The notes under the pieces were generated by a model that searched no databases, was not told the DNA's origin, and saw only the letters and a program-made list of their open reading frames with translations. DNA of 64,000 bases from Bugula neritina (lineage: Eukaryota > Animalia > Bryozoa), in the NCBI GenBank assembly GCA_964035545.1, contig OZ037766.1, positions 1,178,001-1,242,000 of the forward strand. Reading direction: 5' to 3'. The first letter of the stretch is position 1. The number at the start of each line of letters is the position of its first letter. Shown here one piece after another: positions 1-56,416 of the stretch. Made by a program: the position numbers and the translations under genes.

Positions 1-1273
1 ACTGGTCCTTTCCTAAAATAATTTATAATAGCATACATATAGAAAATATATGCAAATGTATAGAAGTAAGCACTACAGTTACTGTAAAAGCTGAAATAAT
101 TGAGCTATAATAATTTTCCACAACACTTGCCTTTTGCTTAGTTTACATTAAATATTCCAATCTTTTTTCTAACCAAACAAGTTTTAATTCAACATTAATT
201 TTATACGAGTAAGATATTACAAAGCAAAGTACCTTGACTCACATATAATATATAAACTGGGTCATGTAATTTACAGCGTTGATACTAGCTGCTATAATTA
301 TATAATACGTTTAAGAAAATTTGTTTGCTCACAGTCTCTTTTACAATGAAAATTAATAAAATATAGCTGAGATCATAAACATGGAATATTTTGAACCTAG
401 CTTGAGTATAATTGGTTGAAAAGCTGCAATAAAAGTTGTGTAGTCTGTTAATTAAAATTAATACAAACATGACTTAATAATTTTGAGTATATGATAAGAA
501 ATTCTAACATAATATATTGATTCTATATAATTAGGTTAACTAGAAATGAAGAGGTATGAGGTAATACTCACACTGAGTTTCTATAGACATAAACAAGTCC
601 TTTCATGCCTTCAGTCAAGTAAACATCTCCATCTTTCTGAAAATAAATTCATAGGTGAAATATTAATTTACATTTAAGGATTGTGATATTTTACATTTTC
701 CTATATTATTTTCTTTTCATTATACTATAATTCTATTATCTTGTCTGGTATTGTTTTGTGATGTTATATAATAATTTTGTATTATTATACTGCTACTATA
801 TATATTATAGGCTATATACTATGATAATAATATATTGAATACTGTATAATATATGTAATGTATAATTAGTTTATGCAATATTATATTAGCATACTTTATC
901 ATATAATATACTATTATATAGCTATTTTATATAGAATAAATCATCTTATGTAAATATACTGTTATTATATTATTTTAATTTTACAGTATATTTTATTATT
1001 ATATAATACATATAATATTTGATCATAATAAATAATTATGATAGACTATATATATATTGTATTGATTCATTAAACTAAGATACTATGGTGTGATAATACA
1101 CTTATATATGTTATAATTATAATATCATATATATTTATATTACCTCATTAAATCACAATGAATATTCTATCAATAAATATAAGTATTTGTAACATATTTA
1201 CCTGAGCTGCAGTGAACAAGATATTAACACTGAGTAGGCTGAGGATGAAAATTAAAATTGATAATTTCTTCAT
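1..1273 (-). CDS. Gene 0 (partial, continues off left edge): inverted paralog of the SRCR-EGF-ZP-FReD-ZP family; exons 1273-1202, 636-572, 12-1
   Basis: Reverse strand gives [24 protein letters not shown]|gt (signal peptide), ag|[22 protein letters not shown]|gtgagt and ag|(V)KGPV, with the same exon sizes (72, 65 nt) and phases as gene 1. Downstream domains lie outside the window and are inferred. Confidence 0.85.
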
Positions 1274-4200
1274 TTCTAAACTGAGAAGTTAAATGCTAAG
1301 AGTACCAGTTTGTACAGCAGTTAGTCTCAGAGTGATTGACTGAACTTGACTGATCATTTATATACCAGAAAGTATGTTGTCTAGGCTACATATATGTGGG
1401 CTGCAAGCAATATTAGTTTAATAGATAATAAACGAAAAAACACAAAACATTCATTCACTGTGGTGGGCACTGGTTAAGTTGTTTGGTCACAGCTATTATT
1501 AAACTATGTTTTTGATGGCTGTCAATTGTTTCATCTTTAAAAACACACAAACTGGGTATAAAGTTAGAATAATAATTACTTTTACATAATTTTCCTAGGG
1601 ATATAAGTGTAAAATCAGTTGGAAGTCAAAAATTAACAGCATAGGCTGAAAGTTTGACGTAAAACAAGATTTTGACATTAGCTGTGCCTTGTGAAAACAT
1701 TTCCATTATCAGTGTTCATCCAGTCATGGTCAAATATGTTCACACAGCAGATGAAGAATGTTGTAAACATGGAATATTCTATAGAGCTAACAACTGTATA
1801 TTTATAGCAAGATGCATTATATATAGTAGAAAAATTACAACATGATCCTAATAATATTATATACAACTCTAGTAAAGTAGACGTCAGCAAATCTTATGAT
1901 ATATTCCATATTACAAAACTTTTTACCTGTTAAAAATAGGCCAGTTTTAAGAAAATCTTCCTGACTATAATATAACTGTGTGTATAATTTGACTTGTAAA
2001 ATTTAATATTTCATCTCTATATATTTAACCTAGTAATAGAATTAGTTGTTGGCATATTACAGCACAATATATTGTTCACTGCAGCTTAGGTAACTGTATA
2101 CCAGAGTATTTCACTGATATATGATACAATATATAGTGTAATATGTAGACATTGCAGTGAAGTTTATGCAAAGCTTTTACGTTAAGCTATATCAAACAAG
2201 CTGTGCCTACAGGCATACAGCACAGTTTTATAGCTTTCTAATATAGCCACTTGCAAAGCATGTGCTAGTTGACAGGTCATGCTAGATAGCAAAATAAGTG
2301 ATTTTCTAAAATATTTTATTCTCACAAATACACTTATAATTTATATTGATTCTCACAAATATTGATTTTTTTTCTCCCGACTAATTGCAGTAATAATAAT
2401 TTAAACTTCATATTTTGCTCATTTACTATTGGAATCTATTGTTTGGCAGTCTTGGTCAGGTGTTGTTGTTTGATAATTGATGTGCTTTAATTTGGAAACA
2501 CATAAAAAATGACATTATATTATATAAGTGAGGATTAAAATGAAAAACAAACCTATAGCTCACAATATTATTATATAGAAGTACTATAATATAATAACTG
2601 CATAAAATATATTATCAAATGATGCAATTTAATAATATTATACTATATAATATTTTTTATTATTATATAATATGAAATAGTATAATACAAAATACTACAA
2701 TATAATATGTATATATCGTTAATCCATGCAGATTTTCGATTCGGGTGCAAAAACAGTGATATTTGAGAAATAATTTCTATGCAAGGTTAATTTACCATCT
2801 CGGAGCTATAATATATGTAGTATATAAATTTATATTGTAGTCATGGGGAGATAACTTTAATTTCTTACACGTCTTTCAAATATTAATAAATACTAATATT
2901 TTAGTGAACTTTACCAATCCAGCTTCTCAATATAATTTTTATGGACTTCTCACAAAATTCATTCAACAATATAGCTGATATACCTATAATACAGCATAAT
3001 TTAGACAAATAGAAAATAATATAATATTTTGCTATATATAGCTGATCATTTTTTATTTTTTTTAAAATAGATGTATGACTGTTATAAAGGAAGCTCTGGT
3101 GATGGTCCCACATAGACTTACTCAATATTGACAGGAAGCATACAAACATATTTCTAAAATAAAGAGTTTGTACTGCATGCATATGACCACATCTATCAGT
3201 GGTTCACCAAACATTTTTGTGAACAGTTCAAAATAGCCACCCTTTGGTTAACAGTGGGCTGATGACTGTCTCCTTCATTACACTGTCAACATTGTCTTAC
3301 AGTTTCTATTGCGACAGCGACTATAAACAGATGCCCTTCCTGACCTTAGAGATTGTGATATTCTTGTTTATAGTGTTTGAAGTCAACTTTATAGTCTGAA
3401 ATTATATATAATCTATAAAAAGTGGGTGTCCCTTATCACACATCACTGCTGCTTATGGAATTGTTGAGTGGGTTTGGGAATTTTTTCTTTATGTTTGATT
3501 GCCAAGTTGGTAAGAATTTCTGGTAATAATATTCTTTGCATTTTATTTATATTTTTAAAAAATAGATAAGTGTATAATATGAATAAACCATAAACATTGT
3601 GATGTGAATGATAACAAAAAATAGAATAAAATTATTATTTTCAACTTTTTAAAACTCATTCAGTAATTAACTTTAGAAAAACACAAAGTTATTGCATTGC
3701 GATAAACCTTAAATTCTCCTACTTAGCATAAGCTGTTGCAATTAGGTGATAAATATTTTGTTACGCATTAGCAAAGCCACATTGCATCAAAAACACTGAA
3801 AGCAATATATATATATATATATATAACTATGACTATAAATGCCAATGAGAGTAATATAGCTCAATCACAGCCGTTATAATAAATTATTTGCGCAGCATTC
3901 ATGTTTTTCATCAACTTTATAAAGATAAATACCTCCCTACCATTTTAAATGTATTTCTTTGACAACTTATAAAATCATATACCCTGAGACAACATGGCGC
4001 AACACATTGAATTATAAACAACAACTATAAGTGAGAATTCTACTGTGGTTAATTGTATTTATTGTACATTAATATTCTGTATAGCCAAATTCCTTTATGG
4101 AAGTGGAAAAATTTTATACAAGCTATATTATTATATATAGGCTATAATATACCTATATATAGGTAGACACATTTTCTATGCATTTTAATGGGCAAATAAT

Positions 4201-5787
4201 GGCAGAAATAACTTTGAGCTTTACGGCAGCAGCCATATTGAAATATATTTTTAATGTTTTGCATACGCACTGTTTTTAAAGCAAACGCAATTTAAACCTA
4301 AAACTTACAAGTTCCGAAATATATTTGCCCATCAAAATGCATAGAAAATGTGTCTACCTATATATAGGTATATTATAGCCTATATATAATAATATAGCTT
4401 GTATATAATTTTTCCACTTCCATAAAGGAATTTGGCTATACAGAATATTAATGTACAATACAATTAACCACAGTAGAATTCTCACTTATAGTTGTTGTTT
4501 ATAATTCAATGTGTTGCGCCATGTTGTCTCAGGTTATATGATTTTATAAGTTGTCAAAGAAATACATTTAAAATGATAGGGAGGTATTTATCTTGATAAA
4601 GTTGATTGCAATGTAGCTTTGCTAATGCGTAACAAAATATTTATCACCTAATTGCAACAGCTTATGCAGAATTTAAGGTTTATTGCAATGCAATAACTTT
4701 GTGTTTTTCTAAAGTTAATTACTGAATGAGTTTTAAAAAGTTGAAAATAATAATTTTATTCTATTTTTTGTTATCATTCACATCACAATGTTTATGGTTT
4801 ATTCATATTATACACTTATCTATTTTTAAAAATATAAATAAAATGCAAAGAATATTATTACCAGAAATTCTTACCAACTTGGCAATCAAACATAAAGAAA
4901 AAATTCCCAAACCCACTCAACAATTCCATAAGCAGCAGTGATGTGTGATAAGGGACACCCACTTTCTATAGATTATATATAATTTCAGACTATAAAGTTG
5001 ACTTCAAACACTATAAACAAGAATATCACAATCTGTAAGGTCAGGAAGGGCATCTGTTTATAGTCGCTGTCGCAATAGAAACTGTAAAACAATGTTGACA
5101 GTGTAATGAGGAAGACAGTCATCAGCCCACTGTTAACCAAAGAGTGGCTATTTTGAACTCTTCACAAGAATGTTTGGTGAACCACTGATTGATGTGGTCA
5201 TATGCAGTACAAACCTTTATTTTAAAAATATATTATGTTTGATAGAGGCTAATCTTCTTTGCATGCCTCCCGTCAATATTGAGTAGGTCTTATATGTGAA
5301 ACCATCATCAGAGCTTTTTTCAACAGTCATACATTTATTTTGAAAAATAATTGTTGTTTGAAATCCCGAAGCCCCTGTAGCGTAATTGGTGGGGGCAATT
5401 ATTTTACAATAATAAAAAAATGATCAGCTAGCAGAATATTATATTATTTTCTATTTGTCTAAATTCTGCTGTTATAAGTAAATCAGTTATATTGTTGTCT
5501 AAATTCTGCTGTTCTAGGTATATCAGGTATATTGTTGACTAAATTTTGTGAGAAAACTGAAACTAAAGTTCATAAAAATTAAATAACGATGCTGAATTGG
5601 TAAAGTTCACTAATATATTAGTATTATCAATATTCGAAAAACTTGCAAGAAATTACAGTTATCTCCCCATGAATACACTATAAACTTATACACTACATAT
5701 ATAGCTCCGAGATGGTAAATTAACTTTGCATGGAAATCCTTTCTCAAATATCACCATTGTTGCACCCATATCTAAAATCTGCATGTC

Positions 5788-5792
<5 letters not shown>

Positions 5793-5858
<66 letters not shown>
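5793..5858. repeat. (TA)n microsatellite
   Basis: Pure TA run, not expanded at the mirror position of the left arm (~2710). Confidence 0.95.
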
Positions 5859-5861
<3 letters not shown>

Positions 5862-6719
5862 GTATTACATTATGTATTATATTATTTTATATCATATTTA
5901 TTCATATTATATAATAAAAAATATATTGTGTGTAGTATATTATTAAATTGTATTATTTGATAATATATTGTAACGCATTTATTATATTATAGTACTTCCA
6001 TAATTATAAACTATTATAGACTTGTTAAATTCCATTTTAATCCTCACTTATATAATATAATGTCAGTTTTATTGTCTTTCCAAATTAAAGTACATCAATT
6101 ATCAAATAACAACACCTGACCAAGACTGCCAAACAAAAACTTCCAATAGTACATAAGAATAATGTAAAGTATAAATTATTATTGCTGCAATTAGTCAAGA
6201 AAAAAACTCAATATAAGTTATAAGCGTATTTGTGAGAATAAAATATTTTAGAAAATCACTTATTTTGCTATCTAGCATGACCTGTCAACTAGCACATGCT
6301 TTGCAAGTGGCTATATTAGAAAGCTAGGACTGTGCTGTATGCCTGTAGGCACAGCTTGTTTAATATAGCCTAATGTAAAAGCTTTGCATAAACTCCACTG
6401 CAATGTCTACATATTATACTATATATTGTATCATATATCAGTGAAATACTCTGGTATACTGTTATACCTTAGCTGCAGTTAGCAATATATTATGCTATAA
6501 TATGCCAACAACTAATTATATTACTAGCTTAATATAAAGATAAAATATTAAATTTTACGAGTCAAATTATACACACATCGAGTCAGGAGGATTTTTTTAA
6601 AACTGGCCTATTTTTAACGGGTAAAAGGTTTTGTAATATGAAATATATCATAAGATTTGCTGGCGTCTACTTTACTAGAGTTGTATATAATATTATTAGG
6701 ATCATGTTATGACTTTTTC

Positions 6720-6819
<100 letters not shown>

Positions 6820-7145
6820 ATGTTTTTTGCTATAAATATACAGTTGTTAACTCTATACTATTCCATGTTTACAACATTCTTCATCTGCTGTGTGAACATA
6901 TTTGACCATGACTGAACACTGATAATGGAAATGTTTTCACAAGGCACAGCTATAATGTCAAAATCTAGTTTTACGTCAAACTTTCAGACAACTTAGTTAA
7001 TTTTTGACTTCTAATTTATTTTACACTTAGATCTTTAGGAAAATTATGTAAAAGTAATTATAATTCTAACTTTATACCCAGTTTGTGTGTTTTTAAACAT
7101 AAAACAATTGACAGCCATCAAAAACATAGTTTAATAATAGCTGTG

Positions 7146-7957
7146 TGTAGCAGTAGCTGGCAGCATGTTTACATGCACACTGTGTGTATGCGTGTTTCCT
7201 AGTCAATCGTCATAACATATTAATAGCCCCTAAACAAAACAATAAATTCTTACAACTGCGCAGCAAAAGCCACAATCAATGAATCAAGTGTATTGCAAAA
7301 GCCTAAGACAACAACTCTGCCAGAATATTTCTGTTCCCTTATTTGGAATTACCTGGGGCTGGTGGTGCAATTTGGGTGACCAATGGGATCTGGAACACAT
7401 CATTTTGTTTATTTGTTGTTTGTGTATTATTCTGCTGCTGTTGGAAAGCATTGGTTATCCTGATCAGTTTCAATTAGTAGAGCCAAAGAGCAAGTTATAC
7501 TACTTATAATTTTACATTAAACAAGATATATATTACTATCTATTGAAACCTAAGAGCAGAAGCTGTATTATCAAGTTATCAGAGAAGTGCTAAAGGTTTG
7601 TCTGCTATTAATTTTTCTATCATTTATTGTCTTAATGCTGTAATATCGATACATTTAGCTTATATTATATGAAATGGTTTATAGCTGACATTATTTTTAA
7701 TGAATTATTATGCAGTAATATTTTGCTTACTTTAATAATTTTTATGTGTGTTATTTCCTTACAGTTCTTATATTCTTGTACTTTATTTAGCCTTATATTG
7801 TGTGTATTTTATTTAGATTTCACGGTGTAGCTTTGTGAGCAAAAGTGTTATAAGTTGGAATAAAATACTAATAACTACACTCACAAGACATCAGTTGAAT
7901 TCCTAAACCTACTCTGATAAGCTTGCGGTTACTAGCAGACCTAACAAAACTGCTACA
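7146..7957. mobile_element. 812-bp insertion, probable solo LTR
   Basis: Termini TGTAGCAGT...ACTGCTACA (TG..CA, 9-bp inverted), 5-bp TSD CTGTG (7141-7145 and 7958-7962), empty site in the mirror arm (~1488-1492), AATAAA at 7859-7864, no coding capacity. Confidence 0.85.
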
Positions 7958-8087
7958 CTGTGACCAAAAAACTTAACCAGTGCCTATACCACAGTGAATG
8001 AATGTTTTGTGTTCTTTCATTAATTATCTATTAAACTATTATTGGTTGCAGCCCACATATATGTAGACTAGACGACATACTTTCTGG

Positions 8088-8123
8088 TATATAAATGATC
8101 AGTCAAGGTCAGTCACTCACTCT
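8088..8123 (+). promoter_or_regulatory. Putative core promoter of gene 1 (TATA + Inr)
   Basis: TATATAAA at 8088-8095 and Inr-like TCACTCT at 8117-8123 (A at +31 from the TATA start), ~60 nt before the ATG. The TATA is conserved in mirror form upstream of gene 0 (~1357-1364). Confidence 0.55.
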
Positions 8124-8178
8124 GAGACTAGCTGCTGTACAAACTGGTACTCTTAGCATTTAACTTCTCAGTTTAGAA

Positions 8179-16202
<8,024 letters not shown>

Positions 16203-18762: not shown

Positions 18763-18915
18763 ACTAGATGTGTTTACTGATAAAGAGTTCAGAAACCTGT
18801 TGGAAACTGATAGTGCTATAAGTATCCATGAAGGAACCAGACTATTTGGAGAACTGGGGATTTCAACCAGCACCTCAGATCTGAGAGTTTCACCAAAAGA
18901 CTGCAAGCCGACTTC
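18763..18915 (+). pseudogene. Orphan, 3'-truncated copy of exon 17 (ZP2-C)
   Basis: Acceptor TATTATTACAG followed by [48 protein letters not shown], nearly identical to exon 17 of genes 1 and 3. Similarity breaks off about 50 nt before the donor, and no neighbouring exons were found. Confidence 0.9.
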
Positions 18916-19106: not shown

Positions 19107-38185
<19,079 letters not shown>

Positions 38186-40828: not shown

Positions 40829-40895
40829 GTTATATATATATAAACTCAGGCTATATACTTGACTTCAAGTATCTTATATTATAACAGGCATGGAA

Positions 40896-42611: not shown

Positions 42612-45600
42612 ATGAATAAATTAACAATTTCAGTTTTCATCCTCAGTATACTCGGTGTTAATATCTTGTTCACTGCAGCTCAGGTATATATGTTACAAAT
42701 ACATATTAAAGTTACTGATATATAGGCTATTCGCTATGTTATTGGAGAATAACGTAAAACCATGCTATATTACTGTAATATAATCATAGTATTATAACAA
42801 CTAATGTATTTTGCAGTGCTGATGCTTAAATAAATAATAAAATGCAAAAATCGAAAACTTTTTATCTCAAACTTTAAACCTGAAATGAGAATAGCTTGTA
42901 AGATATTGCCTTATATTATTATGTTATATTATAAAATGTACTATATTATAATATATTGTATTATGTTATATAGTATAATTATAATGCAAATTATATTACA
43001 TTGTAATACACTAAATATATTATAACATTATATGTTATTAGAACATATTATATATTGCTATAATATAATTGTTATATGATATAATAAAATAGTTTATATC
43101 ATATTACAATATAATGTATTGTAAGATTATATAATATAATATATTATATTATACTTAGAAAAATGCATACTGTAATATAGTTATACTATATTATAATATA
43201 ATATAGTATCATATAGTTTAGTTTAAAGGTATAGTATCATAATATAGTATAGTATAATATTAATTGTAGTATACATAGCACAATAATGCTAATATAGTTA
43301 TATAGTATTATAATATAATATTAAACAATATATAACAAAACGTGATATAATAAAAGACATTGCATTATATGATAATATAAAATATTACAAAAGTTTTATG
43401 TCAGTTTTGAAATTTTTTCAGGAAGATGGTGACGTTTACCTGACGGAAGGCTTAAAAGGACTTCTCTATGTTTATCGAAACTCGGTGTAAATATATCCTC
43501 ATACCTCTTAATTTCTAGCCAACTAAACTCTATCGAATTGATTCAAGTTAAAAGTTATTATCACACTTAAAATTATTAAGTTATGTTTGTAGTTGCTAGC
43601 TTATAATTATATGCAACTGTTATGGTAATTTTTGAACAAGAAGCCGAAAACAAGTTCACAAAAATCAATGATCATGAAATTATCTCCTTTGTATAAAAGA
43701 TATGTGATTGAAAAATGTCTACGAAGTAAGATCATGCATATAATACTGTAATATAATTCTAGTATAATAACAACTAATGTATTTTACAGTGCTGATGCTT
43801 GATTTTGAATAAATAATGAAATGGAAAAATCAAAAACTTTTTATCTCGAAGCTTTAACCAGAAATGGGAATATTGGATATAAATTTCAGCTTTCTAGTGT
43901 TGTGTAAAAACATTCACAGAAAGACAATGAATAGTGCCGGCATGGTTTTCAAGTGCTTTATACTTCTATACGTATACATATGTGCCATTATATATGAATT
44001 GTCCTAGAAAAGGACCAGTGTGTAATGATAGTCCCCCCCCCCCCCCCCGTCCCAGTTGGACAAGTGGTGTGTAGAAATCTTGGTGCCACATCCCTCATTA
44101 ACATTACACGTGGAAATACAGGTCCTACAAGAAGTATGTATATTTATATTTATATTCATGTTGACAATATTTGGTGCAAAACACTCAGCAGAGATATTTC
44201 TACACTCAAAGTATTTCCCTTTCTATAAATAACTAATGCATGACATGAAAATATGATTTGAAAAACTATGAGTGGCATAAAATGATTGTACATGTTAATT
44301 AATTAATGTAACCACTTATACTTTATTGTGTTTTGTGTAGCAAATAGTCATGCAATTAAAATTCTTTGTTTATTCTGCACTATGATTAAAAATGTTGTGA
44401 GTTTTGACTTATAAAAACCAGTAACATTTACAATATCCTGTGTGATCTAGAAAGATTTTTATTTGGTGGCATAAGACAGCAGCTATTATAGCCTACATAC
44501 ATAACTATAATAATACCCTTTAGATAAATATATATCTTATTAACTTTTATCTATATACCCATGCATCTAATAACTATGATTGTAGACTTCTTACTAGATG
44601 ATGTATACTGCAATGGGACAGAAAGTAACTTAGCAGAATGTAATCACTATCCTTGGGGTTCTCATGATTGTGGTGAAACTGAACATTTCTATGTGGAGTG
44701 TGAAGGTTAGTATATTGAGATCAGTTTTACTCTATTCTACTCACTTTATTTCTGTACACTATAATATACTCTATAACATATAACTGTGTATTGTATACAC
44801 TATACTCTACACACTGTATACTTTGCACACTGTATACTCTACACACTGTACATTATATACACTGTATATTCTATATACTGTATATTCTACATACTGTGTA
44901 TTCTATATCACACTTTATATTATATACACTGTATATTTTATACACTGTATATTCTACATACTGTGTATTTTATATAACACTTTATATTATATACACTGTA
45001 TATTTTATACACTGTATATAATTATACACACTGTGTATATACGCTACATTCTGTATATTCTCTATACACTATATGTAGCGTCACCACTAACTATGGATGA
45101 GTTGTACTGGTGTTGGTGTTAGTATCTTTATTTTTACTTATTCCAACTGCCGTAAGAAACTGTAAAAGTAGGTTATGCAAATATAACTGGTTTTTATAAT
45201 AAAACAAACAGAAAACTATTTATGAAATTGTAAAATATTCAAGCATATATGCAGATTTTAGATTAATCACCTCTTGCCTTCTTTTAGTGGCTAGCTAGGG
45301 TGGGTTTGACTCTAGGAAATGACATTGTAGGTCTACTAAAAATATTAAAGTTTATAATAAAACTGACATTAAATGATAACTGCCATAGACAAAGTTAAGT
45401 AATTATATCAGTTAAGACAAGTAATGATGCATGTATCACATAAACAAAGATGAAACTTGCATTCAAAGTTGACTTGAATTAGTAGTTGCAGTAAAATACT
45501 GTTATGAGTAAAAGTAAAACTTTAAGCTACAAATTAGGGTACTATCCTGTGACAAACTGATCAATAACTGGAGAACTTGCCTTAAGAATTCGTAATTTTA

Positions 45601-48600
45601 TGAGAAATCTATTATAAAGTAAACACAGTATATAGCCATGAATTCTATCATGCACTGACCACACTGGCATTCCAAACTTTTTAAACTCCTAAACATGTTA
45701 AATAAACCAAATATTTATTATTAAGTTGAAATAGATGAAAATACTTAAAAAAAGCTTCAAACCATTACAAATACTAAAAAACAAAACTAACCTGTGCCTC
45801 TTTAAGTTAATTCCAATTCAAATTCATTTATATTTTGTTAATTATATCATTTAAAATTGATTGTTATTGATGTGATGAACTTGCATCGCTAGCGCCTACT
45901 ATTCTACTAGCTGTAGGTTCAACGTCTGCACTGAAACATCCGGGCTGCCGAAGCGTAAAGCCACAGCCAATGGGCAAGAGTGTGCTGCTATCTAATTAAT
46001 GAATTTACAACTAGCAGTCGTTGCGTAGGCGGGAATCAAGTGATGCGATAACCTATTTGAGTGAAACGTTATGCTAAACGCAACGCTGAATGCCCGATTA
46101 ACTATTACGTATTCATTACACTACGTTACTTTTACTGCTTGAATTAATTATGTTCAGTGCTAACTTTACACTATATATCACGTAATATTGTTGAAACCTA
46201 ATTTCAGCTTATTGTGATGATATAATACATTGTGCTTAACTTCATATTTTTAATCAAGTAGCTTTTTTACAAATTAGTGAAAATATTTCAAAGCTTGTAC
46301 CAACCATAATTATGCTTATTTTATTTAAAAAAAAGTAGAATTTATATACATTATAAAAACTATTGTAAGTTTTATGCTTTGCTAAGTTCAATTCATATAA
46401 CAGCTAAAAAGTGTTAAATTTTGCAGCAGATGTGAATGAATGTCAAACAGACAATGGTGGATGTAGTCATACCTGTGTCAAAACTATTGGTTCTTTCTAT
46501 TGTGAATGTCCTGACCATTTCTATCTTTCTGATAACAAAAGAAATTGTATAGGTATGCAGTATTCACATGTATGTTATTTATTATATATAACTATGGTCT
46601 TCTTAGTGTTGGAAAGTTCTATGAAGTTAGTTATGCTATCTTTATAATTAAACAGTGGCTCTTTATATTTGGAAACAACAGTACCTCAACATTCTTGTTA
46701 ATATGTTTGAAAGAAAACAGAACATTATCTTAAACTGCACTTTTTTTATAACACATTTTGAGTCACAATAAGCTGATCAAACAAAATTAATTTTATGACC
46801 AGATTTGATAGCCTATTGCAAAACTTACTATACATTATATCCTGTCAGTTAATCCAAATATACACAACACATCCCTGTTAGTTACTTAAAAATTTGATTT
46901 TTGTGTATACAACACATGCAGTTATATTCTGTTGTCTAATAAAATGCATTTTATCAAATATATAAGATGAAAAAATTCTTTTAAATCAATAAATCAAAAT
47001 ATTATTGGTAACATAAACCTTATCTTCTATTTACAGATGTGAATGAGTGTGTAGAGGATAATGGAGGATGTTCACATAACTGTGTAAATACTGAAGGATC
47101 CTATCACTGTGAATGTCCTGAGTACCTCTATCTGTCTGACAATGAAACTTGTTCAGGTAAGCTGAGAAGATGTTGATTTGTTGTACACAACAACTCAGTG
47201 ATAAACCACCAGATGCTAAAGTAATCAATAATCCATATTAGATTATGTTAAAACTCTATTTCTTTCAGCTAATGGTACAACTATTGACTGCTCATCTTCA
47301 CATGGAATGAAAGTCACTCTGGATAAACGGACACTTTTCTTTCTGCCAGACCAACTCACTTTACTAGACACTCAGTGTGTATCCAGTTCTAACTCTACTC
47401 ATATCTGGTTGCAGACAGATTATGACAAGTGCTCCACATCTCAAAAGGTGGTGTTTATTTTTATAAAGAATATAATTGCCTAACAGTTCATTTATTACAC
47501 CGGTAATAATATGCCTATATACCACTAAATCTCTATGGGTTCAGAGTGCAGAATGATTAACCCAATTCACTGCTCCAATTGTACGTTACTTATTTTTTAT
47601 GTCCTCTATAAATTTATAAACTGCATCAACTGCTAGCACTTATCACTTGAAGATATTAGGACGGGGAATTAACTCACAAAGATTTGTTATGCTCTGCATT
47701 ATTAGAATGTATAAATACCTTTATGTGAGTCAATTCCTATTACTATCTTCATGTGATAGTTGCTAGCAGTTGATGCAGTTTATCTATTTATAGACAAACA
47801 TAAAAATAAATAACTGTTGCAGTAGCTTTTTGGTAGCTTTCCAAAAACCATTGTGTAACCAAAGTTATTTGTGAAAGCTTTCGCGATAGCTATTTACTGA
47901 CAGTTTTTGTTCGATGAGTCAGTGTAGCTCAATTTTCCTCCTGCTAACGATGCAGGCAATCTATACTTGATTGTCAAAAAAGTTGTAAGTATCAAGTATT
48001 ATATTATCTTTTGTTTTGAACTTCATTAACTAAACGTTTTGTCAGCTATGTAATTAATGTTAAGTTAACAATATGTTTGTAATTTTTATGGTTATAGGTT
48101 ACAGTATGAGTATGAGTCTAAGTATGAATGTGAGCTCAAGTCTAAGTCTAACTTAGAAAATATACTGTTGGTAATAGACAAAATATAGAGTTGTGGCCTG
48201 CTTCTGCATGTGTCCTTTATCCATTTACCCTTCATCAAGTGAATCGCCATACATAGGCATCCGTGCCAAACAGCACTCGTGCTGACGCAGTAACAATTAT
48301 CAGCTGTCACAGTAACATACAATTAGGGCAGTGAATTGGGTTTTCCCATTTTCTAAATAAGTGTTTTTCAATTATCATTTTCGAAATGTCACGGATTCAA
48401 ATCTCTATATATGGGTTCAACATAAGGGGCATGATTGAAATCCGAAGCATTTCAAAAATGAAAATTAGCAAGCACCTATTTAGAAAATGGACAAATAAGC
48501 AACAGACAACTTGAAAATAGACAGTTAGCAATTGAACAACTAAAAAATAGACATGGCCTAGTCTGGAGAAGATGCTTAGCATCTATAGCTGGGTTCCAAA

Positions 48601-51600
48601 TAGCTCATTGTAAACATTGGCGATTTTAAATTGAAACTATATTCTGTAACTAATTCTAAGCTATTTTAGACTTGATCAAATGCTGAACGCCCCCTCCAAA
48701 CTAGGCCATGTTAAATATTTTTCATTTTCCAAACCTCTACTTTCTAATTGTCTATTTTCTAATAGTCTATTTTCTAATAGTCTCTTGGTGATTTGTCTAT
48801 TTTAGAAATAGGCATTTTCCAATTGTCCTTTTCAAAATGTTGTGTCACATGAGCAGAACATTTATTAGGTGTCTGCAAATAACTCATCGAAGACACGGTC
48901 AGTTATTTTATGATGCTTTGACTTTTGGAGAGAGCAATTGAGTTTAATTGCTAAATAGAAAACATTCTTTTTATTGGAAAAATATGAGCAAGGAAACAGG
49001 AAATGAAATAAGATATACAATTAGCCAATAAGAATCCCAAATCAAATAAAACAGAAAATAATGTAGTTCAAAATAGAAATAATACGTACACAATCAGTCA
49101 AAGTACCCATATTAGTTTTAATGTATTCAAATTAAAAATCAAGTGGTCCTATTAGTTTATTCTATAAGTATTCATGGATAACTTTGACAGCTACAGCATG
49201 AGTGATAGTTGTTAAGATGAACTAGCATAAACAATTGACAGCATATGCTTTATTGGGCTATAGATCTACCTGACCATTTCTAAAAAAATTCAGTAGGTTA
49301 ATTGATCACAGCGGCTTTGCTATTTACGCCAGTTTTTTAAGTTAAACTCATCATTTTTTTAAAACTAAAAAAAACTTTAGATAAAAAGCTGAAATCTTCA
49401 TATTTACATGCAAACCCATGCAGTTAGAAAAAAATATTGTGTTTGACAACAACTGGTTTTTGTTTTTTTACGTTTGTTTTCACAAATCAATTTTTCACTA
49501 TGACTTGAGCATTTTTGAAAACCAATTTTCAAATACACAATGATTGCATCTTCAGTGCCTGGCATTACTCTTATTAATAATAGAATAATAAATAAAATAA
49601 ATTTCAAAGTTATTATGATGGCTGAAATTTTAAAACAGTTACAACTGGCTAGGTATTGTCTTCTTTAATATTTTATTCTAAATGATAGAATTATCATATT
49701 TTTACGAAACCTTTTGTTGATGAAATCAAACTAATCAGTGTTGTGCTACATACTTTTGTTGAAAATAGAATTCCTCACTTGGACATGTTAAAGTTTTTGT
49801 TTTGCAGACGGTAGATGACACTGTTGTCTTTTCCAACACCATCCTAAGTTCTGATGAAGTTGCAGCTGGCTCTGTCATGTTCTATGACTTGATCTATATT
49901 CCTTTCAAGTGTGTGTTTGCTGCTACAAGTAATGTCACTCAAGTAACCACTCAAGTTCCACGACTTATCATGAGACTTGAAGATCAAGGTAGCCTCCAGG
50001 GAAGGTAAATATGTATGTGAAAATTCAATGCATGAAATATACATGATATGTTTAAAATGGTGGCCATATTATCTGTCAATAATGGCAAAATATACTGAAA
50101 CAGTTTGCATGTCAAGACAACCTAGCTAAAATCATGGGTCATCACTGTCAGGTGTGTATGGGATTTTTGTTAGCCTAAGAGTATTTGCAGTTAATTAGAT
50201 AAGCTACTTCATATCTTTTTCAACAATAACATGTTGGTAAGAGATTTTTACAAAAGTGTCACTATAGATTGAAAAAAGAGGGTATAAACTGTCTTAAGTA
50301 GCTAGTAAATCATATTTTTGATCTTTTGGGGCAATTACAGCTTGAAGCTTTATAACGACCAATCAGATGATAGCAGCTCTCTTTCTCCACCAATTGAGCT
50401 ACGTCAAAGAGAAACTCTTTACGCAAAGTTGGAGCCAAGTGACTCTGGACTCAAACTGATACCAGATGAGTGCACAGTTTACTCTGAGCAGAGAGTAGCA
50501 AGTCAAAGGGTTATAGAGAATGGGTGAGATAGTATATTCTAGTATTCATGTGCAGTTATATCTGTCAAAGCTATCTAACATATATAGCTGGCAAGTGTGT
50601 ACTGATGCTATACCCACAATTATTTTTTTATGAAACGTCTAGAATGCAAGAATGAATCCATATAGCATTATAAAAGGTGTTTGTGGCCAACGCAGCTATC
50701 ACTGTGCATGCTTGAATTGTTGTAGGCATAGGCTCTATGGCATAATGTTTAAGTGAAACGTTAATAAAATAGGTAGTCTTGACTAACAATCTTGCAAAAT
50801 TTTCTATTGATTGGTCAAAAATATATAATATTATGTGTTGAGAACTATTAAGCAAAGAAAATTTTTTTATTTTATTCAAAGAAAAACGTGTATGTTCATA
50901 CTAGTTGAGAGTTTTAATGTATTCTAGGTTAGCTGCCACCTCTTTCACCAAGGTTCATACATCTGATGGCTACCAGCTCAGTTATCCTGCCTTTACTTTC
51001 CAAGGAGAAAAGGGAAAATACACATTGATTTGCAACTACTCTGTTGATGTGCCAACTACTCCATGTTTGAACTCTAGTTTTATTGTGTCACCTGAGGAAA
51101 TCGGTCAGTATATAAACTGTGAATGCTTATAGTTCATAGATTTTAACTGAGAAATAATTGCCCCCACTGGGAATCGAACCCGAGACTTCTGGCTTGCAAG
51201 CAAGTGTGCTAACCCATTACACCACGGGGACCACTGGGTAAACTCATCACTACATCTCACCCAGTTCTCTGAACTCCACTGGCCTATCTACTACCCCTTC
51301 AGTCTTCAGGCTCCCCTGGCCACTCAACTCCCTCAGAGTACTACTACACTTCACTAAAGGCCAAAATAGCTTGAAAAATGATTGCCCTCTCTGAGAGTCG
51401 AACCTGACACCTCTGGCTTGCAAGCAAGTGTGCTAACCATTACACCACGGGGACTACTGGATAAACTCATCAGTACATTAACTAAGCTGAATTCTTAACA
51501 AAATTTAATGAAATTGGTAGCAATAAAAACTTCAATAAAAAAAATTCCCCCGACGACCACCTAAACAATAGTGGCCCGGCCACTCCAAATCACAAAGAAA

Positions 51601-54600
51601 ATCAATATTTTGTTAATATCATTTATCTGAACACATAAATCTTGTAATGACTGTAGCCCAGGAAGCAATAACAAATTACTGTCATGGTCTGGATCAAACC
51701 CAGGAGTCTGAGATAACTATTGCCAACAAGACTGTCAAAGTACTTTGTGATTTGGACACACCTAATGGACCTTGGATTACGATTTTGAGACACACGACTG
51801 GAAGCTCTCTTTTTAATGAAAACTATACCACTTTTGAAAGGGGCTTCGGAAATGTGAGCCAAGACCATTTCATTGGTTAGTTTTAGATAAATTTTATATT
51901 TTTATTTAAGTTGTTGCGTAGGAGTATTTTATATTTTCAAAATGTTCAGAATTCATTCAATTTACTTAGCATATACAAGTATTGACATTAGAAAGAAGTC
52001 CTAGTTTGTGTAAATTGATAAGTCGTCCTTTGAATAAATCATAAAAAACGAAGCTATACTTTGATATTATTTTAGTTGTGTTGCATTGTAGAATGTAAGT
52101 TTATAGGGTAAAAAAATTCCTTTGAATAAATCATAGAAAAGAAGCTATACTTTGATGTTATTTTAGTTGTGTTGCATTGTAGAATGTAAGTTTATGGGGT
52201 AAAAAAATTCAGTGACAAAGTGTTTAGGTGCACAATACAATAAGTTTATATAGGCCTACCAAGAAACTAATTCATATCATTTGTCAACTAGATCTAATCA
52301 TCACATTAAAATAATTGTGTTTCAGGTCTAAAGTTTCTACACCTCCTCTCTCATGAACAACAAATTGAACTGAGAGTAACTCTTGGAGATGGAACTCTTT
52401 ATGCTGAATATGGTAATTTCAAAGTGGGTGGTCCTGAAACTCACTACATGATACAAGGTATGACTCATTCCCCTCTCACTTACTGCATGTATGCTAGTAG
52501 ATCATGATTATACATAACTGAGCAGAATTCATAGTAGGCTTGTGTGTGCATGGGTCAAATTGGATGTTTCAATATACATTTTCTGGTTTGTTCTGCTTTT
52601 CAGAATTGTCTGGGTACCAGGGAACAGCTGGTGTTCTTACAGATGAAGTGTCACAGAGGATGCTGGGAATGAAATTCTCTACATACGATAGAGATAATGA
52701 CCAGTGGGCAGATGGAAACTGTGCTAGTATGTGTTGAGAACTCTTTGTAGTATTGAAATCCATATTTTCTAGTTTTGCTAAAATAACTGAAATACTAATA
52801 CTAAAATGATACACATTATCATTTTTAATGTTTTTCATTAGCTGCAATCTTAAAGCATTGAACTATAGCCAATATAGTATATACTGCCATTACTCTAAAT
52901 TATGTAATTTGAATCTCAATCTACTAGCACATATCTAGATTGTTCGCAGTCACCGAAAACTTGTTCTTGTTTTTAAGACATTTCATTGGGTTATAAATCA
53001 ATAGATTGATAACTTTTTCTTGTTGAAGTTAAGCTAACTTACATAAAATATAATTGAAACTTATTATTTCTGTTTTTCTTCTAGACAGTTACAGAGCCAT
53101 GGGCTGGTGGTATGACCAATGTCTTCAAACCTGTCTGACATGTGAACCAATTGTTTACTATCAACAGAGCTTACCGTCTGAGGTCAGCATGAAGGTCAAG
53201 GTCAACAAAGCAGGTTAGAATAAACCATGTTTAAACTTTTGAAGTTTAAACTAAAGTCTATAGAAATTAAGAAGATCAACAATCCAAAACTAACTTATAA
53301 TTTGATTGCCTGTACTGTCTTCAAAAATAATAAATATAAACTAATCTTAAGGGTTTAAACTGTAATTACAAGACCACACACTGAGTGCCAGTACCATATT
53401 ATGATTTATATTATCAGATAATAGACAAGTATCTTAGTTTTTATCTCATAAAAACTTGATGCCCAAAGCTTCATCTTAAACTTAATTTAGCAAATAGTGG
53501 TTACAGTACATGCAGTTCTTAGATCATAGAGCATAAAGTTATTATATGTTCTTTATGCATAGATGCGGCGCAAAAAGGCAACACCGGGTCCCACCATTCA
53601 CAAGTCGTTGACAGCTCTCAAGTAGAACTCAGATGCACTTCAACCAGTATGCACTTCTCTATAAACAGCTCAGTTTTAGTTGGTCTCAGCCCATTGGACT
53701 TACAACCCTTAATGGAAAACTGTCAGGGGTTTACGGCTACCACCCTCAATGGTCAATACGAATACTCTATACCTCTTCTAAATTGTGGAGCGCAAATACA
53801 GGTCAGAAATTTTTGATTTGGTCAAAATAATTGTTTTCAACTTTTGGACATGTATAAAATGAAGATAAAAGTCTTTTTAAAATGGTAAATAAAATGTTTA
53901 AAATATTTAGCAAAATTTTGCAATAGTATAGGGTTTTTTACACAGTCTACCTACTATGTCCTATGACCAATATTTATATTGTAAATATATCAATTAATAA
54001 ATTATAAATGTTATACAGTATTTAAAATTTCATTTTGTTGTTTGATTGCAAAAGTCATTTTGGGAGTGTAATGAGAAATATTTTTAGAAATTTAGCTTAA
54101 TCATTGGGCACGCTATATAGTATACTTTAAAACTTATTTGTAAACTTCATATAGCTGTGTTAATTAAGACCCTATGCTACGCACATTTCATAGGTGGAAG
54201 GGGACAATTTGATTGTTACCAACTCCCTTGTCTACTCCAGTAACATAAGTTCTGAAGTTAAACACTTCTCTGACATCATCTTGACACAAAGCTGCAGATA
54301 TCCACTTAACAACTACTCAAGTTCTGTAGAATACACTGTGAGACCAGAGAACTACACTTTCACTGCAGAGAATGACGCAGAAGCCTATTTTGATATCCAG
54401 TGAGTCGTTATATCTTTTATAAAATTAGATTTCATGAGTTTTATAATTAAAAGAGTATATAAACTGATAAATTTGGGAGTACTTTTTTTAACTTCTTAAG
54501 CTTTTGTAACTATTTTAAATAAAAATGAAATAATACTATATTTATAATAATATTGAAGACTAGCAACAAAAATAGTTTCCAACGATAAATAAATTCCTAA

Positions 54601-56416
54601 AATAAACCACTGTGCTGTGAGTATCGCCATTTAAGGCATTTGAAATTACTAAATATTATTATGTTTTAATATACATATTATATTATTTTTATGACAACAA
54701 ACAAAATAGCTTTTATAATAATTATAGATCATCTATTTTTAGAGCAAAATCAACCATGCACTGTGTGAGCATACTTTCATGGCATTCAAAATGATTCTAC
54801 ATTATGTTTCTTATTATTACAGACTAGATGTGTTCACTGATAAAGAGTTCAGAAACCTGTTGGAAACTGACAGTGCTATCAGTATCCATGAAGGAACCAG
54901 ACTGTTTGGAGAACTGGGAATTTCAACCAGCACCTCAGATCTGAGAGTTTCACCAAAAGACTGCAAGCTGACTCCAACAAGCAATGCTAATGACCCAGCT
55001 GCTCAAATGGTTATCCAGAATGGGTAATACTTGTAGTTTCACATATCATATAATACATACAAAAATACCAATACCTCAGCAGCAAATTTCCTTGTTTTCA
55101 TTTTGATAATAGTAATACCATTACATCATTTTTTACTTTTGGCATACCAGTATATAAGTAGAAAGCTTGAAGTTTAATATATCTGCATTGTATGAAACTA
55201 TTACGTACAGCAGTTACAGTTTCTTCTATATACCACTAGAAAGTAAAGACAATATTTTAATGCATGATATCAAGGCAGAAGATATTAAATTATGTCTTAG
55301 TTGAAGATTTTCAAATCTCTCTAAGTGTACATTATGAAATTTACCCCAAAATTTAAAGCAGTATAGATGGAAGTAAACTAAATAAAGCATTTGTTTACTC
55401 AACATTTGACTCATATAAAGTCAAAGTCAAGTAATAAATTGTGCTTGCCAAAGTTTAATTAAAACTAATATTGGTCATCATTTTATCTATCTATAATGAC
55501 TGATGGCTATATAGAAACACTATTTTAATAATATATTATACAGAAGCAAAAAATGCTGCCTTGTTCACCACAGCACCTTAACATCTGTTCTGGTGGTTTT
55601 AGATGTCGGACTGGATACTTGGCTACGGTACTGTCCAGTAACAAATTTCGTATGCTTTCAACTAGTTTTGTATCTCATACATCAAAGAACAGCTACCTTC
55701 ATTGTTCCGTGAACATCTGTGACCCTGATAATATGTCAAGGTAAATGTAGCTTCTAGCAAGATGAGCTGTAACTAAAGGTGACATTAATTAACATGACTG
55801 ATTCTTAAGTTTTATTGGATTAAGTCTTAAAAAAATTGATTGATTGATTGATTGATAAACTATTTTATCAATCAAAATCAATATAATATTATAATCATGC
55901 CAAGTTCAAGCACTTTGATTTTTAACAGTAACTGTTCTTTTTTCAAATATTTCATGCTATTAGTTTGTTAATGAAGTAACTAATATCTTAAAATCAGTGA
56001 CTGCATTAATCAGCTAAACAATCGGTAAAATGTTATTTTTATGAAATGGTAGAAGAATTTAACGTTTTGTGTTTCACACTAACACACAATTTTCTGTTCC
56101 ACTTTTCTAGTATTATTTTCTCAGAATTTACCAAGAGGAAATTATTTAATAATTGCTAGCAAAGCTCTCGATGATACTAGTTTTATAAAATATAGGCATA
56201 AACTTTATGCTTTGAGATAAGCGTGCATGGTCAATATGCACTTTGCAGTGTTTCTAATGAGTTATCAGTAAAACTCAATAAATATTGCCTACAATTTCGT
56301 TAAACTCCTACAAATAGTTTGTACTATCAACCTACCAACTCTGATGTTTCTCTGCTGTTTGTAGATGTGAGAGAAATTGTCCTCCCCTGTCAGACATTGG
56401 GAATACTCTTGGTTAA
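42612..56416 (+). CDS. Gene 3: SRCR-EGF-EGF-ZP-FReD-ZP paralog, 19 exons, +1 frameshift in a C16 run of exon 3 (null allele or homopolymer error)
   Basis: Exons 42612-42683, 43422-43486, 44008-44133, 44586-44705, 46430(or 46427)-46552, 47037-47156, 47269-47447, 49808-50004, 50341-50523, 50928-51103, 51657-51875, 52326-52457, 52604-52726, 53085-53213, 53563-53801, 54194-54399, 54823-55023, 55603-55740, 56365-56416. All other exons are open with intact splice sites. Exon 3 is 126 nt where 3n+2 is required, giving TAG at 44072-44074. Confidence 0.85.
44750..45075. repeat. Degenerate TACACTGTATA-type tandem repeat after exon 4 of gene 3
   Basis: Repeated ACACTGTATA/ATTCTACATAC units; a shorter homologous tract follows exon 4 of gene 1 (~10170-10325). 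Confidence 0.8.
47561..48340. mobile_element. piggyBac-like MITE in gene 3 intron 7
   Basis: TTAA|CCCAATTCACTGCTCCAATTGTACGTTAC ... GTAACATACAATTAGGGCAGTGAATTGGG. The right-hand TTAA is not preserved. Confidence 0.6.
47585..47815. mobile_element. ~230-bp fold-back (hairpin) element nested in the left end of the piggyBac-like MITE
   Basis: ATAAACTGCATCAACTGCTAGCA pairs with TGCTAGCAGTTGATGCAGTTTAT; imperfect pairing extends over nearly the whole length. Confidence 0.7.
48460..48845. repeat. Inverted-repeat element with internal ~15-bp subrepeats
   Basis: CATGGCCTAGTCTGGAG (~48551) pairs with CTCCAAACTAGGCCATG (~48694-48710); flanked by AAAATAGACA-type repeats on the left and GTCTATTTT-type repeats on the right. 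Confidence 0.55.
51156..51478 (-). repeat. Partial tandem dimer (~225-bp period) carrying two tRNA-like sequences, antisense in gene 3 intron 10
   Basis: Reverse strand TCCCCGTGGTGTAATGGTTAGCACACTTGCTTGCAAGCCAGAGGTGTCAGGTTCGACTC (A and B boxes) present twice. Stems are imperfect, so this is a SINE/pseudo-tRNA rather than a tRNA gene. Confidence 0.7.
52027..52210. repeat. ~92-bp tandem duplication in gene 3 intron 11
   Basis: CCTTTGAATAAATCATA...GGGTAAAAAAATT occurs twice back to back. Confidence 0.9.

Follow-up and report, generated by a model that had tools for sequence, protein, structure and literature searches.

Five expressed neighbouring genes of the bryozoan Bugula neritina (A–E), three of them full length in the window (the whole 64,000-nucleotide stretch of DNA that was analysed), encode a protein in which a fibrinogen-related domain (FReD) sits between two ZP modules, a combination that looks new. 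All five carry a stop codon at the position of the K of the KR cleavage site, which precedes the external hydrophobic patch (EHP) in a paralog (F) that lacks the FReD. There is, in our judgement, about an even chance that these genes form a bryozoan family of DMBT1/uromodulin-like surface-matrix glycoproteins with the history set out below.

Gene inventory, transcripts, and domains

The preliminary description of this DNA counted four paralogs, three of them complete with 19 exons. The window does hold three full-length paralogs on the forward strand (A, B, and C) and, on the reverse strand, exons 1–3 of a fourth, D (Table 1), and the claim stands for A and B, both intact; in A every intron is GT..AG and internal stops are absent. 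It does not stand for C, which is frameshifted as assembled, and D, complete and intact beyond the window, has 20 exons, 3 EGF domains, and 975 aa. The protein length given earlier, 931 aa, is that of B; A has 934 aa. A fifth copy, E, lies upstream of the window with four EGF exons, the last one split by an 18.5-kb transposon, and EGF number among A–E is thus 2–4; the sixth paralog, F, is 700 kb away. Proteins of the family hold 14–18 N-linked sequons. D and A stand head to head in an inverted duplication whose arms are 75–97% identical, with one 4.4-kb tract at 95%, introns included. Haplotig duplication was rejected, as the copies differ by 5–40% and all lie on one 33-Mb contig. Exon 3 of C is 126 nt owing to a run of 16 C, for which assembly error, a null allele, and slippage are candidate causes. 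The retrotransposon in B intron 9 has a single 1422-aa frame with protease, RT, RNase H, and integrase in Ty3/Gypsy order, and is not part of the B protein. An orphan copy of exon 17 between A and B has a similar counterpart at the equivalent place in JGI contigs L028/L029.

Table 1. Positions of genes, domains, and other elements in the window
Feature	Position	Strand	Details
Inverted duplication, D and A head to head	1..17141	.	arms -8195..4198 and 4322..17141; 123-bp spacer, 4199-4321
Gene D, exons 1-3	1273-1202 (signal peptide), 636-572, 12 to past window start	-	gene reaches window position -7215 (C2:1170785)
Gene A	8179..16202	+	exons 8179-8250, 8808-8872, 9433-9554, 10019-10138, 10570-10689, 11028-11147, 11260-11438, 11710-11906, 12034-12225, 12626-12807, 13029-13250, 13376-13507, 13667-13777, 14141-14275, 14702-14940, 15042-15247, 15428-15628, 15779-15916, 16151-16202
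SRCR, one domain	A exons 2-4, 8808..10138	+	6 Cys, group A pattern
Two calcium-binding EGF domains	A exons 5-6, 10570..11147	+	each a phase 1-1 exon
ZP module 1 (ZP1)	A exons 7-10, 11260..12807	+	ZP-N 4 Cys; ZP-C 2 Cys only; FXF intact (AFTF)
Fibrinogen-related domain	A exons 11-14, 13029..14275	+	cassette flanked by phase-1 introns
ZP module 2 (ZP2)	A exons 15-19, 14702..16202	+	full 10-Cys pattern; FXF degenerate (STIF); stop codon 16200-16202
Decayed propeptide/EHP relic, A 3' UTR	16203..16265	+	out of frame
Orphan exon 17 copy (ZP2-C), between A and B	18763..18930	+	
Gene B	19107..38185	+	19 exons, 931 aa; one GC donor (exon 2)
LTR retrotransposon in B intron 9	27224..31950	+	identical 190-bp LTRs 27224-27413, 31761-31950
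Gene C	42612..56416	+	19 exons, about 933 aa with X at break; exon 3 out of frame as assembled
16-C run in C exon 3	44033..44048	+	one-base frame shift

The possibility raised earlier that exons 1–10 and 11–19 are separate genes was rejected on the RNA joints 10–11 and 14–15. RNA contigs from four studies, which come with no tissue labels attached, join FReD to ZP2 and ZP1 to FReD, the latter in E-type sequence (the contig across the 10–11 joint has 1 mismatch in 20), so ZP1, FReD, and ZP2 belong to one transcript and each copy is a single gene. Among the matches listed, RNA contigs show splicing of exons 5–19, the 11–12 joint excepted.

Homology, domain, and structure searches used single exons as queries, joined proteins serving only for local alignments and statistics. 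Pfam, exon by exon, bears out the order reported before: SRCR (E 8e-9), two EGF_CA, ZP-N, ZP-C, Fibrinogen_C (PF00147, E 2e-9), ZP-N, and ZP-C. For the ZP modules the matches come from exons that each cover half a domain (E 2e-5 to 9e-3, most of them below cut-off), and the cysteine pattern supports them: in A, the ZP-N cysteines are 214/243/261/301 (ZP1) and 681/710/731/770 (ZP2), and ZP2-C has the six type II cysteines (852, 873, 906, 911, 919, and 923). ZP1-C of A has lost four of these, retaining only Cys 379 and 432, and its tail holds an EHP-like but uncleavable SVNSSLILS. The two modules are only 18–20% identical, and the interdomain linkers look long in alignment. The 6-Cys SRCR and the missing membrane anchor of the preliminary description also hold, by direct count of cysteines and by a 19-mer hydropathy scan of A–F in which no segment beyond the signal peptide looks clearly membrane-spanning (best value ≤1.4 in A, B, C, E, and F; 1.97 in D, inside the SRCR). 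CUB had no match in any exon scanned, nor D8C in A exons 3–18, although the D8C model matches a pipefish multi-ZP protein.

Probable gain of the FReD and exchange among paralogs

Paralog F has the same exons minus the four FReD exons, and its exons 10 and 15 lie 247 bp apart. In another species' gene (outgroup loci L025 and L036) the exons are likewise the same but for the absence of exons 11–14 (L032, L045, and L046 are too short to show neighbouring exons, and L026, L033, and L037 begin too near exon 15 to show any preceding FReD). At C2:6.93 Mb another, separate gene ends in a FReD whose exon boundaries correspond to those of the cassette and whose tail is likewise CLTC; this tip motif is common to two other genes of the same genome. 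Since F and the other-species gene are FReD-less, and the phase-1 cassette has introns matching those of a separate FReD gene, we consider it highly probable that the FReD was shuffled into a FReD-less ancestor. A–E form one clade on ZP2 (87/100), in a tree whose root is not fixed, and a single FReD loss is the less likely alternative.

The FReD itself has the GWWY..C motif and a calcium-site motif, FSTYDRDND, that aligns to fibrinogen beta; its exons are matched about equally well by ficolins and by tenascin, fibrinogen, and MFAP4. At its tip stands C-S, C-F, or C-L where tachylectin-5A has C-H, which we take to be the position of the acetyl-binding site. In that weak alignment (E 0.9) the tip is also shorter, and because of this and the missing His after the Cys, acetyl-sugar binding is not predicted.

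The claim that ZP2 is near-invariant was overstated: 74–76% of its columns are invariant, with a mean identity of 87–89%, and among A, C, D, and E it is ZP1-N that is more conserved (90%, versus 82–83% for ZP2). Between A and B, pS is 0.15–0.19 in ZP2 versus 0.56–0.71 in exons 2–10, and because the likeness extends to silent sites and introns, the similarity of ZP2 is largely due to gene conversion. Sites private to B make up 288/1145 in exons 1–9 versus 46/836 in exons 15–19 (p 4e-34). B is the oldest paralog in exons 1–10 and 12, and in exons 11, 13, and 15–19 it has been homogenised with its paralogs. In exons 13–14, 35 sites separate A and D from B, C, and E. As previously suggested, the variable parts are the heads, the SRCR and the ligand end of the FReD (exons 12–14) being among the most divergent. 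Paralog dN/dS is 0.22–0.62 (0.22–0.58 outside the signal peptide), highest in exons 12–14 (0.54–0.58) and above 1 in no domain, and all domains appear on these ratios to be under purifying selection.

Such ratios would suit a purely structural matrix or adhesive protein (of cuticle, larval adhesive, or embryo envelope) in which SRCR, EGF, and FReD bind matrix proteins and the copies differ through drift and conversion. Structural roles are the rule among ZP proteins, the FReDs of tenascin and MFAP4 bind matrix proteins, and both the missing lectin-type His and the even-handed matches of the FReD exons fit; yet two old classes of FReD tip survive amid surrounding conversion, dN/dS peaks in exons 12–14, and the SRCR head is kept. 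We hold this reading to be somewhat unlikely.

Probable loss of the external hydrophobic patch

F, L025, and L026 end in KR followed by the EHP. In A–E the stop codon is followed by a relic of the EHP, given for A in Table 1 and present in B, C, D, and E with differing indels. An assembly artefact was rejected, as the stop is found in all five copies, in the independent JGI contigs L028/L029, and in an orphan 3' end. The EHP has thus probably been lost from the main product of A–E. The loss would be merely apparent if a cryptic GT..AG intron of 44–46 nt in exon 19, or a downstream acceptor, removed the stop; such a cut would leave A, C, E, and L028 in frame, and a good many of the differences among the relics are silent in that frame. 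But the shortest of the 107 modelled introns is 101 nt, the would-be acceptor has no pyrimidine tract and reads CAA in B and D, and an RNA contig (X4) at the 18–19 joint extends 34 nt into exon 19, beyond the would-be donor at nt 25, and we consider such rescue unlikely. The absence of the EHP in A–E had been overlooked in the preliminary description.

On the accepted model, ZP proteins require the EHP for secretion, and assembly is set off by its release; uromodulin also needs the FXF motif to polymerise. With the register set by sequence alignment, FXF is intact in ZP1-C (AFTF or VFTF) in all six genes and in L025/L036, while in ZP2-C the second F alone is kept (STIF, TRSF, VRSF, or TRFF), the motif being degenerate in all species seen; neither module holds the complete set of polymerisation features. 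Co-polymerisation of the paralogs through an invariant ZP2, as first proposed, fits poorly with the largely conversion-like similarity of that module, its degenerate FXF, and the missing EHP.

The proteins might instead be soluble or granule-stored glycoproteins that do not polymerise, the ZP modules serving, like those of betaglycan and endoglin, as rigid spacers or for dimerisation, with the EHP lost as control of assembly ceased to matter. ZP1-C lacks four cysteines and a cleavage site, ZP2-C has its degenerate FXF, and there are precedents: some ZP proteins are known not to polymerise (PMC7737619), and the nematode stand-alone ZP-C families T01D1.8 and F46G11.6 end before the EHP, having naturally lost its strand and the cleavage site (PMC7456536). 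We nonetheless find this quite improbable, given the FXF retained in ZP1-C, the retention in F and the outgroups of KR and EHP, the device that times polymerisation, and linkers that look long, unlike the minimal ones of betaglycan. The nematode families also lack ZP-N, whereas here a complete 10-Cys module has probably lost its EHP by one nonsense change and the relic is still readable.

Probable function and relation to known systems

Egg coats, mucus, and cuticles are all built by ZP proteins. The reading we prefer, of DMBT1- or uromodulin-like matrix glycoproteins, would run as follows. The proteins would be secreted and heavily N-glycosylated, their ZP modules building or joining an outer matrix (mucus, cuticle, or the lining of gut or brood chamber) and their SRCR and FReD binding ligands, for example glycans of microbes or of the matrix. 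An ancestor SP-SRCR-EGF2-ZP-ZP-KR-EHP, kept as F, would have taken up the FReD cassette of four exons into the phase-1 intron that separates its ZP modules; a stop would have arisen at the KR site, and the FReD-bearing gene would then have multiplied to five copies swapping exon-sized blocks, with two classes of FReD tip kept (A and D versus B, C, and E). Without the EHP, the second ZP-C would have an open strand slot, so that assembly of A–E would most probably take place within the secretory pathway, or together with a partner (F, for example), and the proteins would leave the cell already assembled, with no activating cleavage at its surface. The secretion, assembly, ligands, and tissue of A–E are all points that we infer. 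Uromodulin, whose bacterium-binding ZP filament is controlled by the EHP, goes unsecreted and forms polymers in the ER when truncated before the EHP (PMC7737619); A–E are natural counterparts of that mutant, and their secretion is therefore not assured. Other likenesses to uromodulin, GP2, and OIT3 are the calcium-binding EGFs ahead of ZP, the 10-Cys type II ZP2, and the cleavage site and EHP of F; the differences here are two ZP modules and the absence of D8C and a GPI anchor.

DMBT1 (hensin, SALSA) has many 8-Cys SRCRs, CUB domains, and one ZP module. The present proteins share its SRCR head, C-terminal ZP module, lack of a membrane anchor, and presumed secretion, and exon 4 matches DMBT1 SRCR structures; they differ in having one 6-Cys SRCR, EGFs, two ZP modules, and a FReD, with CUB and EHP absent. 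What we take to be the bacterium-binding motif of DMBT1, VEVL...W, is not kept: LYVYRNSV stands at the matching stretch, an observation that speaks against DMBT1-like binding. The DMBT1 SRCRs are of group B (PMC10855680). Two tandem complete ZP modules occur in Takifugu and Alligator genes (PMC6262864) and ten in pipefish XP_054652476.1, but the vertebrate multi-ZP proteins are recent near-identical repeats or D8C-led, whereas here ZP1 and ZP2 are divergent, with SRCR-EGF first and the FReD between. Ficolin, tachylectin-5, FREP, and tenascin/MFAP4 share the FReD fold and both FReD motifs; here, however, the domain is internal instead of C-terminal, and collagen, Ig, and FN3 stalks are absent.

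Like the preliminary description, which knew of no characterised protein with a FReD between two ZP modules, we found none described in the literature or in exon-level protein searches. Literature on pairings of ZP, fibrinogen, SRCR, and DMBT1, or on bryozoan or Bugula members, yielded nothing relevant, and a Bugulina expression paper leaves these families unmentioned. In protein searches, exons 11 and 15 retrieved only near-identical JGI fragments and exon 14 had no match; a first metagenome scan gave no match, Atlas no usable match, and PDB searches with the ZP exons weak matches at best (betaglycan ZP-C, E 0.015). Some long matches (P0013, P0015–P0017) were rejected as repeat-inflated chance matches.

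The function first proposed, self/non-self recognition, would make each gene a gamete or colony system uniting in one chain the parts of the ascidian EGF-ZP egg-coat protein (HrVC70/VC120) and the fibrinogen-like v-Themis (and s-Themis). The ascidian self-sterility genes are separate and extremely polymorphic, with v-Themis nested with a polycystin-like receptor gene. Variable EGF number, shuffled FReD and SRCR blocks, and a mosaic copy in another sample (L024) that fits no single paralog are consistent with the proposal, as is the rarity of selfed offspring in B. neritina (PMC6802076). Against it, dN/dS nowhere exceeds 1, and the A/D-type copy of another sample (one sample compared) is 94–99% identical in exons 7 and 9–13. 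Neither the polymorphism, in that one comparison, nor the partner of a Themis-type locus was found: a genome search with PF08016 placed no polycystin-like gene in the cluster, the nearest PKD_channel matches, at C2:0.93 and 1.68 Mb, being at least 200 kb away and reading as voltage-gated K and Na/Ca channels. We judge this proposal very improbable. A broader reading, in which A–E are naturally 'pre-cleaved' ZP proteins, is speculative and, we think, improbable: a complete ZP module would fold, be secreted, and assemble without an EHP as part of a covalent ZP-FReD-ZP unit, and the SRCR and FReD tips, reshuffled among the copies by conversion, would present a variable matrix that recognises symbionts, microbes, or the colonies and gametes of others.

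The locus is an unusually complete record of domain shuffling, with an empty-site paralog, a matching donor-type gene, symmetric intron phases, and later conversion. One genome holds both states of the ZP terminus, KR and EHP in F and five expressed EHP-less copies one nonsense change apart, and this natural pair makes the dispensability of the EHP directly testable. The literature searched names no molecules for immunity, symbiont handling, or self-sterility in bryozoans, and A–E are usable candidate genes for all three. If the reading as a pre-cleaved recognition matrix were true, the genes would show a new way of controlling how ZP proteins assemble, and Bryozoa would have their first candidate locus for recognition.

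Cluster, transcripts, and neighboring sequence

An all-against-all comparison of six-frame pieces reveals three collinear exon series on the + strand and, at left, a large inverted repeat, by which genes D and A share a mirrored upstream region. The preliminary description had counted four paralogs, three of them complete with 19 exons. A–D are indeed present, but a fifth copy (E) lies further left and a sixth paralog (F), which lacks the fibrinogen-related domain (FReD, exons 11–14), about 700 kb away; A and B are intact, whereas C, with all 19 exons, is out of frame at a run of 16 C, where we placed an X in its translation. This break may be an assembly error or a real null allele. The reported length of 931 aa is that of gene B. 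Genome-wide searches of the 216-Mb assembly with exons 7, 11, and 17 returned A–E, one distant paralog, and one orphan exon; the orphan copies of exons 17 and 19 are remnants of further, deleted paralogs. The retrotransposon in B intron 9 is a recent insertion, and the EGF exon of E that is split by an 18.5-kb element is phase 1-1, so that its skipping would preserve the reading frame.

Features of the cluster and its surroundings (window positions unless marked G000, the assembly, in which the window is C2:1178001-1242000; negative positions lie left of the window)
Feature	Position	Strand	Details
MFS-transporter-like exon, two copies	near -59400 and -64600		
Retroelement (L005/L006)	about -45400 to -51300		RT-like frames; downstream of gene E
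18.5-kb element	-37747 to -19200 (G000:C2 about 1140253-1158800; L002:800-813)		CAG..CTG ends; 8-bp target duplication (AACGAATG); splits last EGF exon of E
Gene E	left of D, outside window		four EGF exons, last one interrupted
Orphan exon-19 copy (L001)	-9954		after gene D
Gene D	starts 1273, complete beyond window	-	975 aa, three EGFs
Inverted duplication, gene-scale	spacer 4199-4321 (123 bp), arms out to -8195 and 17141		
Gene A	8179-16202	+	19 exons with GT..AG introns throughout; 934 aa, frame uninterrupted by stops
Orphan exon-17 copy	18763-18930		after gene A
Gene B	19107-38185	+	931 aa
29-bp tandem repeat	21745-22615		~30 copies, 97% match; stops just 5' of B exon 3 acceptor
LTR retrotransposon	27224-31950		B intron 9, within (TA)n run; identical 190-bp LTRs, open 1422-aa frame, Ty3/Gypsy domain order
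Gene C	42612-56416	+	19 exons as in A; exon 3 frame broken by one base
16-C run, C exon 3	44033-44048	+	one-base frameshift, within most variable SRCR loop
tRNA-like or SINE-like 108-bp copies (two)	51148-51255, 51372-51478		C intron 10
Short elements resembling these	19459-19582, 20876-20994, 58309-58394		
MBT-repeat gene exons (PF02820)	60698-63339		preceded by 20-bp tandem repeat, ~47 copies
Distant ZP-N exon, exon 7-like	G000:C9:8327067-8327168		no other family exon nearby

The five-gene FReD-bearing family is real and expressed. RNA contigs from four runs, each belonging to a different study, map to 10500–16400, exons 5 onward; their joints match modeled introns 5-6, 7-8, 8-9, 9-10, 10-11, 12-13, 13-14, 14-15, 15-16, 16-17, 17-18, and 18-19, with the 6-7 joint present as pieces of single contigs, although no single contig spans the region and paralogs cross-map, so that joints are not assignable to full-length isoforms per gene. 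Among the joints listed, the first ZP module (ZP1) is joined to FReD (10-11) in one run, with E-type letters and 1/20 mismatch; two runs join FReD to the second (ZP2; 14-15), a third run shows a loose end there, and one 896-nt contig spans exons 14–18. Exons 1–10 and 11–19 are therefore not separate genes. EGF-to-EGF joints show that transcripts with more than two EGFs exist. Two of the RNA runs derive from a “symbiont metagenome.”

ZP modules and the missing C-terminal tail

Pfam matches per exon run SRCR, two EGF_CA, ZP-N, ZP-C, Fibrinogen_C, ZP-N, and ZP-C; with only half a domain per exon, the ZP matches score modestly, yet the cysteine pattern agrees, bearing out the order first described. 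In agreement with that description, no membrane anchor is evident in the protein sequences. The two ZP modules are 18–20% identical. Two of the six ZP-C cysteines remain in ZP1-C, along with the FXF motif and a tail that resembles the external hydrophobic patch (EHP) but is uncleavable; ZP2-C keeps all six, with FXF, which uromodulin requires for polymerization, reduced to its second F in every species seen. Neither module is a textbook polymerizer, and with each feature set incomplete, the polymerization through ZP2 that had been proposed is not established. We consider a non-polymerizing protein improbable. The FReD–ZP2 linker of B (35928-35966) reads ...ESKVRR, a candidate basic cleavage site that the other copies lack; cleavage there would release the SRCR–EGF–ZP1–FReD half.

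F ends in CTRNC...VIG-KR-...VVVSAGPFFIQ and the outgroup loci L026 and L025 in VIG-KR...VLVSAGPFYFN and RIS-KR...AYVSAGPINID, tails with a cleavage site plus EHP. A–D instead terminate at NTLG-stop and E at NTLV-stop, TAA occupying the K codon of KR, and JGI contigs L028 and L029 share the stop. The DNA 3' of the A–E stops holds a recognizable EHP relic, shifted to other frames by indels but still in the ancestral frame (stop-RSKFICTPTSVNNSVMAFIL) at the orphan 3' end at -9954. The loss could be only apparent if a cryptic 44–46-nt intron brought the relic back in frame, as its removal would for A, C, E, and L028; against this, none of the 107 introns modeled here is shorter than 101 nt, the acceptor is missing in B and D, and one RNA contig extends beyond the would-be donor. 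We consider it probable that A–E have truly lost the EHP. The final strand of uromodulin ZP-C is the EHP, and a uromodulin truncated ahead of that strand fails to be secreted and forms ER polymers (PMC7737619); EHP-less ZP-C domains, also without ZP-N, occur in two nematode families (PMC7456536).

Origin and variation of the FReD-bearing genes

F (C2:470961-478914; intact, 752 aa) has the exons and phases of the family except exons 11–14, its exons 10 and 15 being 247 bp apart. The site is likewise empty of FReD exons in L025 and L036, two loci from other ENA metagenomes. Related contigs labeled BRYA16-1 presumably come from the plastic-debris metagenomes of Bryant et al. 2016, which are dominated by encrusting bryozoans (PMC5069773). 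The FReD cassette is phase 1 at both ends. Elsewhere in the genome, at C2:6.93 Mb, another gene ends in a FReD whose exon boundaries match those of the cassette and which shares the unusual CLTC tail; C8 carries a second FReD of the CLTC type. Acquisition through exon shuffling most simply explains these sequences, a single FReD loss being the less likely alternative; in the ZP2 tree A–E form one clade (87/100), and the tree does not settle how F and the outgroups branch. With at least 155 FReD exon matches genome-wide and other FReD genes arrayed in large tandem clusters (G000 C1:23.0-23.4 Mb, C4:19.3-19.4 and 24.2-24.3 Mb, C8:6.19-6.37 Mb), the fibrinogen-related repertoire is expanded in this bryozoan.

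Mean amino acid identity among A–E and dN/dS (pooled Nei–Gojobori, without site models) are 70% and 0.28 for SRCR, 84% and 0.28 for ZP1-N, 70% and 0.35 for ZP1-C, 74% and 0.41 for FReD (exon 12, 0.58; exons 13–14, 0.54), 87% and 0.36 for ZP2-N, and 89% and 0.22 for ZP2-C. B is 59–77% identical to the other paralogs in exons 1–9 versus 81–96% in exons 15–19, its private sites falling from 25% to 5.5% (p 4e-34). Every paralog pair has long identical runs, some tracts extend into introns (A–B 96.5% over 14740-15221), and 35 sites in exons 13–14 separate A and D from B, C, and E. Such mosaic similarity reflects gene conversion or unequal exchange, which mostly accounts for ZP2 uniformity and keeps reshuffling both classes of FReD tip. 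In another sample, one copy matches A or D at 94–99% identity over most exons, L024 (another copy) is a mosaic of its own, and JGI contig exons are 88–99% identical to the best-matching paralog exon.

Likely role and relatives

A signal peptide, 14–18 N-glycan sequons per protein, SRCR/EGF heads, and anchorless ZP modules point to a DMBT1/uromodulin-like secreted matrix glycoprotein. In the reading we favor, at about even odds, the A–E proteins would form a surface matrix and their heads would bind ligands. FReD retains the calcium-site motif and lacks the Cys-His of tachylectin-5A, so that acetyl-sugar binding is not predicted. A purely structural role is rather unlikely. Gamete or colony self-recognition might suit a species that rarely selfs (PMC6802076), but no polycystin-like gene was found linked to the cluster and dN/dS among A–E exceeds 1 in no domain; the self/non-self role first suggested thus gains no support, and we judge it very improbable.

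A–E belong to none of the DMBT1, uromodulin, ficolin, and Themis families. A FReD between two ZP modules was not found in the literature searched or in searches of 1.8 + 5.8 billion proteins with single exons rather than joined proteins as queries, which is a weak negative; close relatives surfaced there solely as exon fragments in marine metagenomes. Tandem ZP modules have precedent (PMC6262864), also in a pipefish protein, as does each of SRCR+ZP, EGF+ZP, and EHP loss. What gives the locus its interest is the natural pair of EHP-less (A–E) and EHP-bearing (F) proteins, together with a traceable origin.
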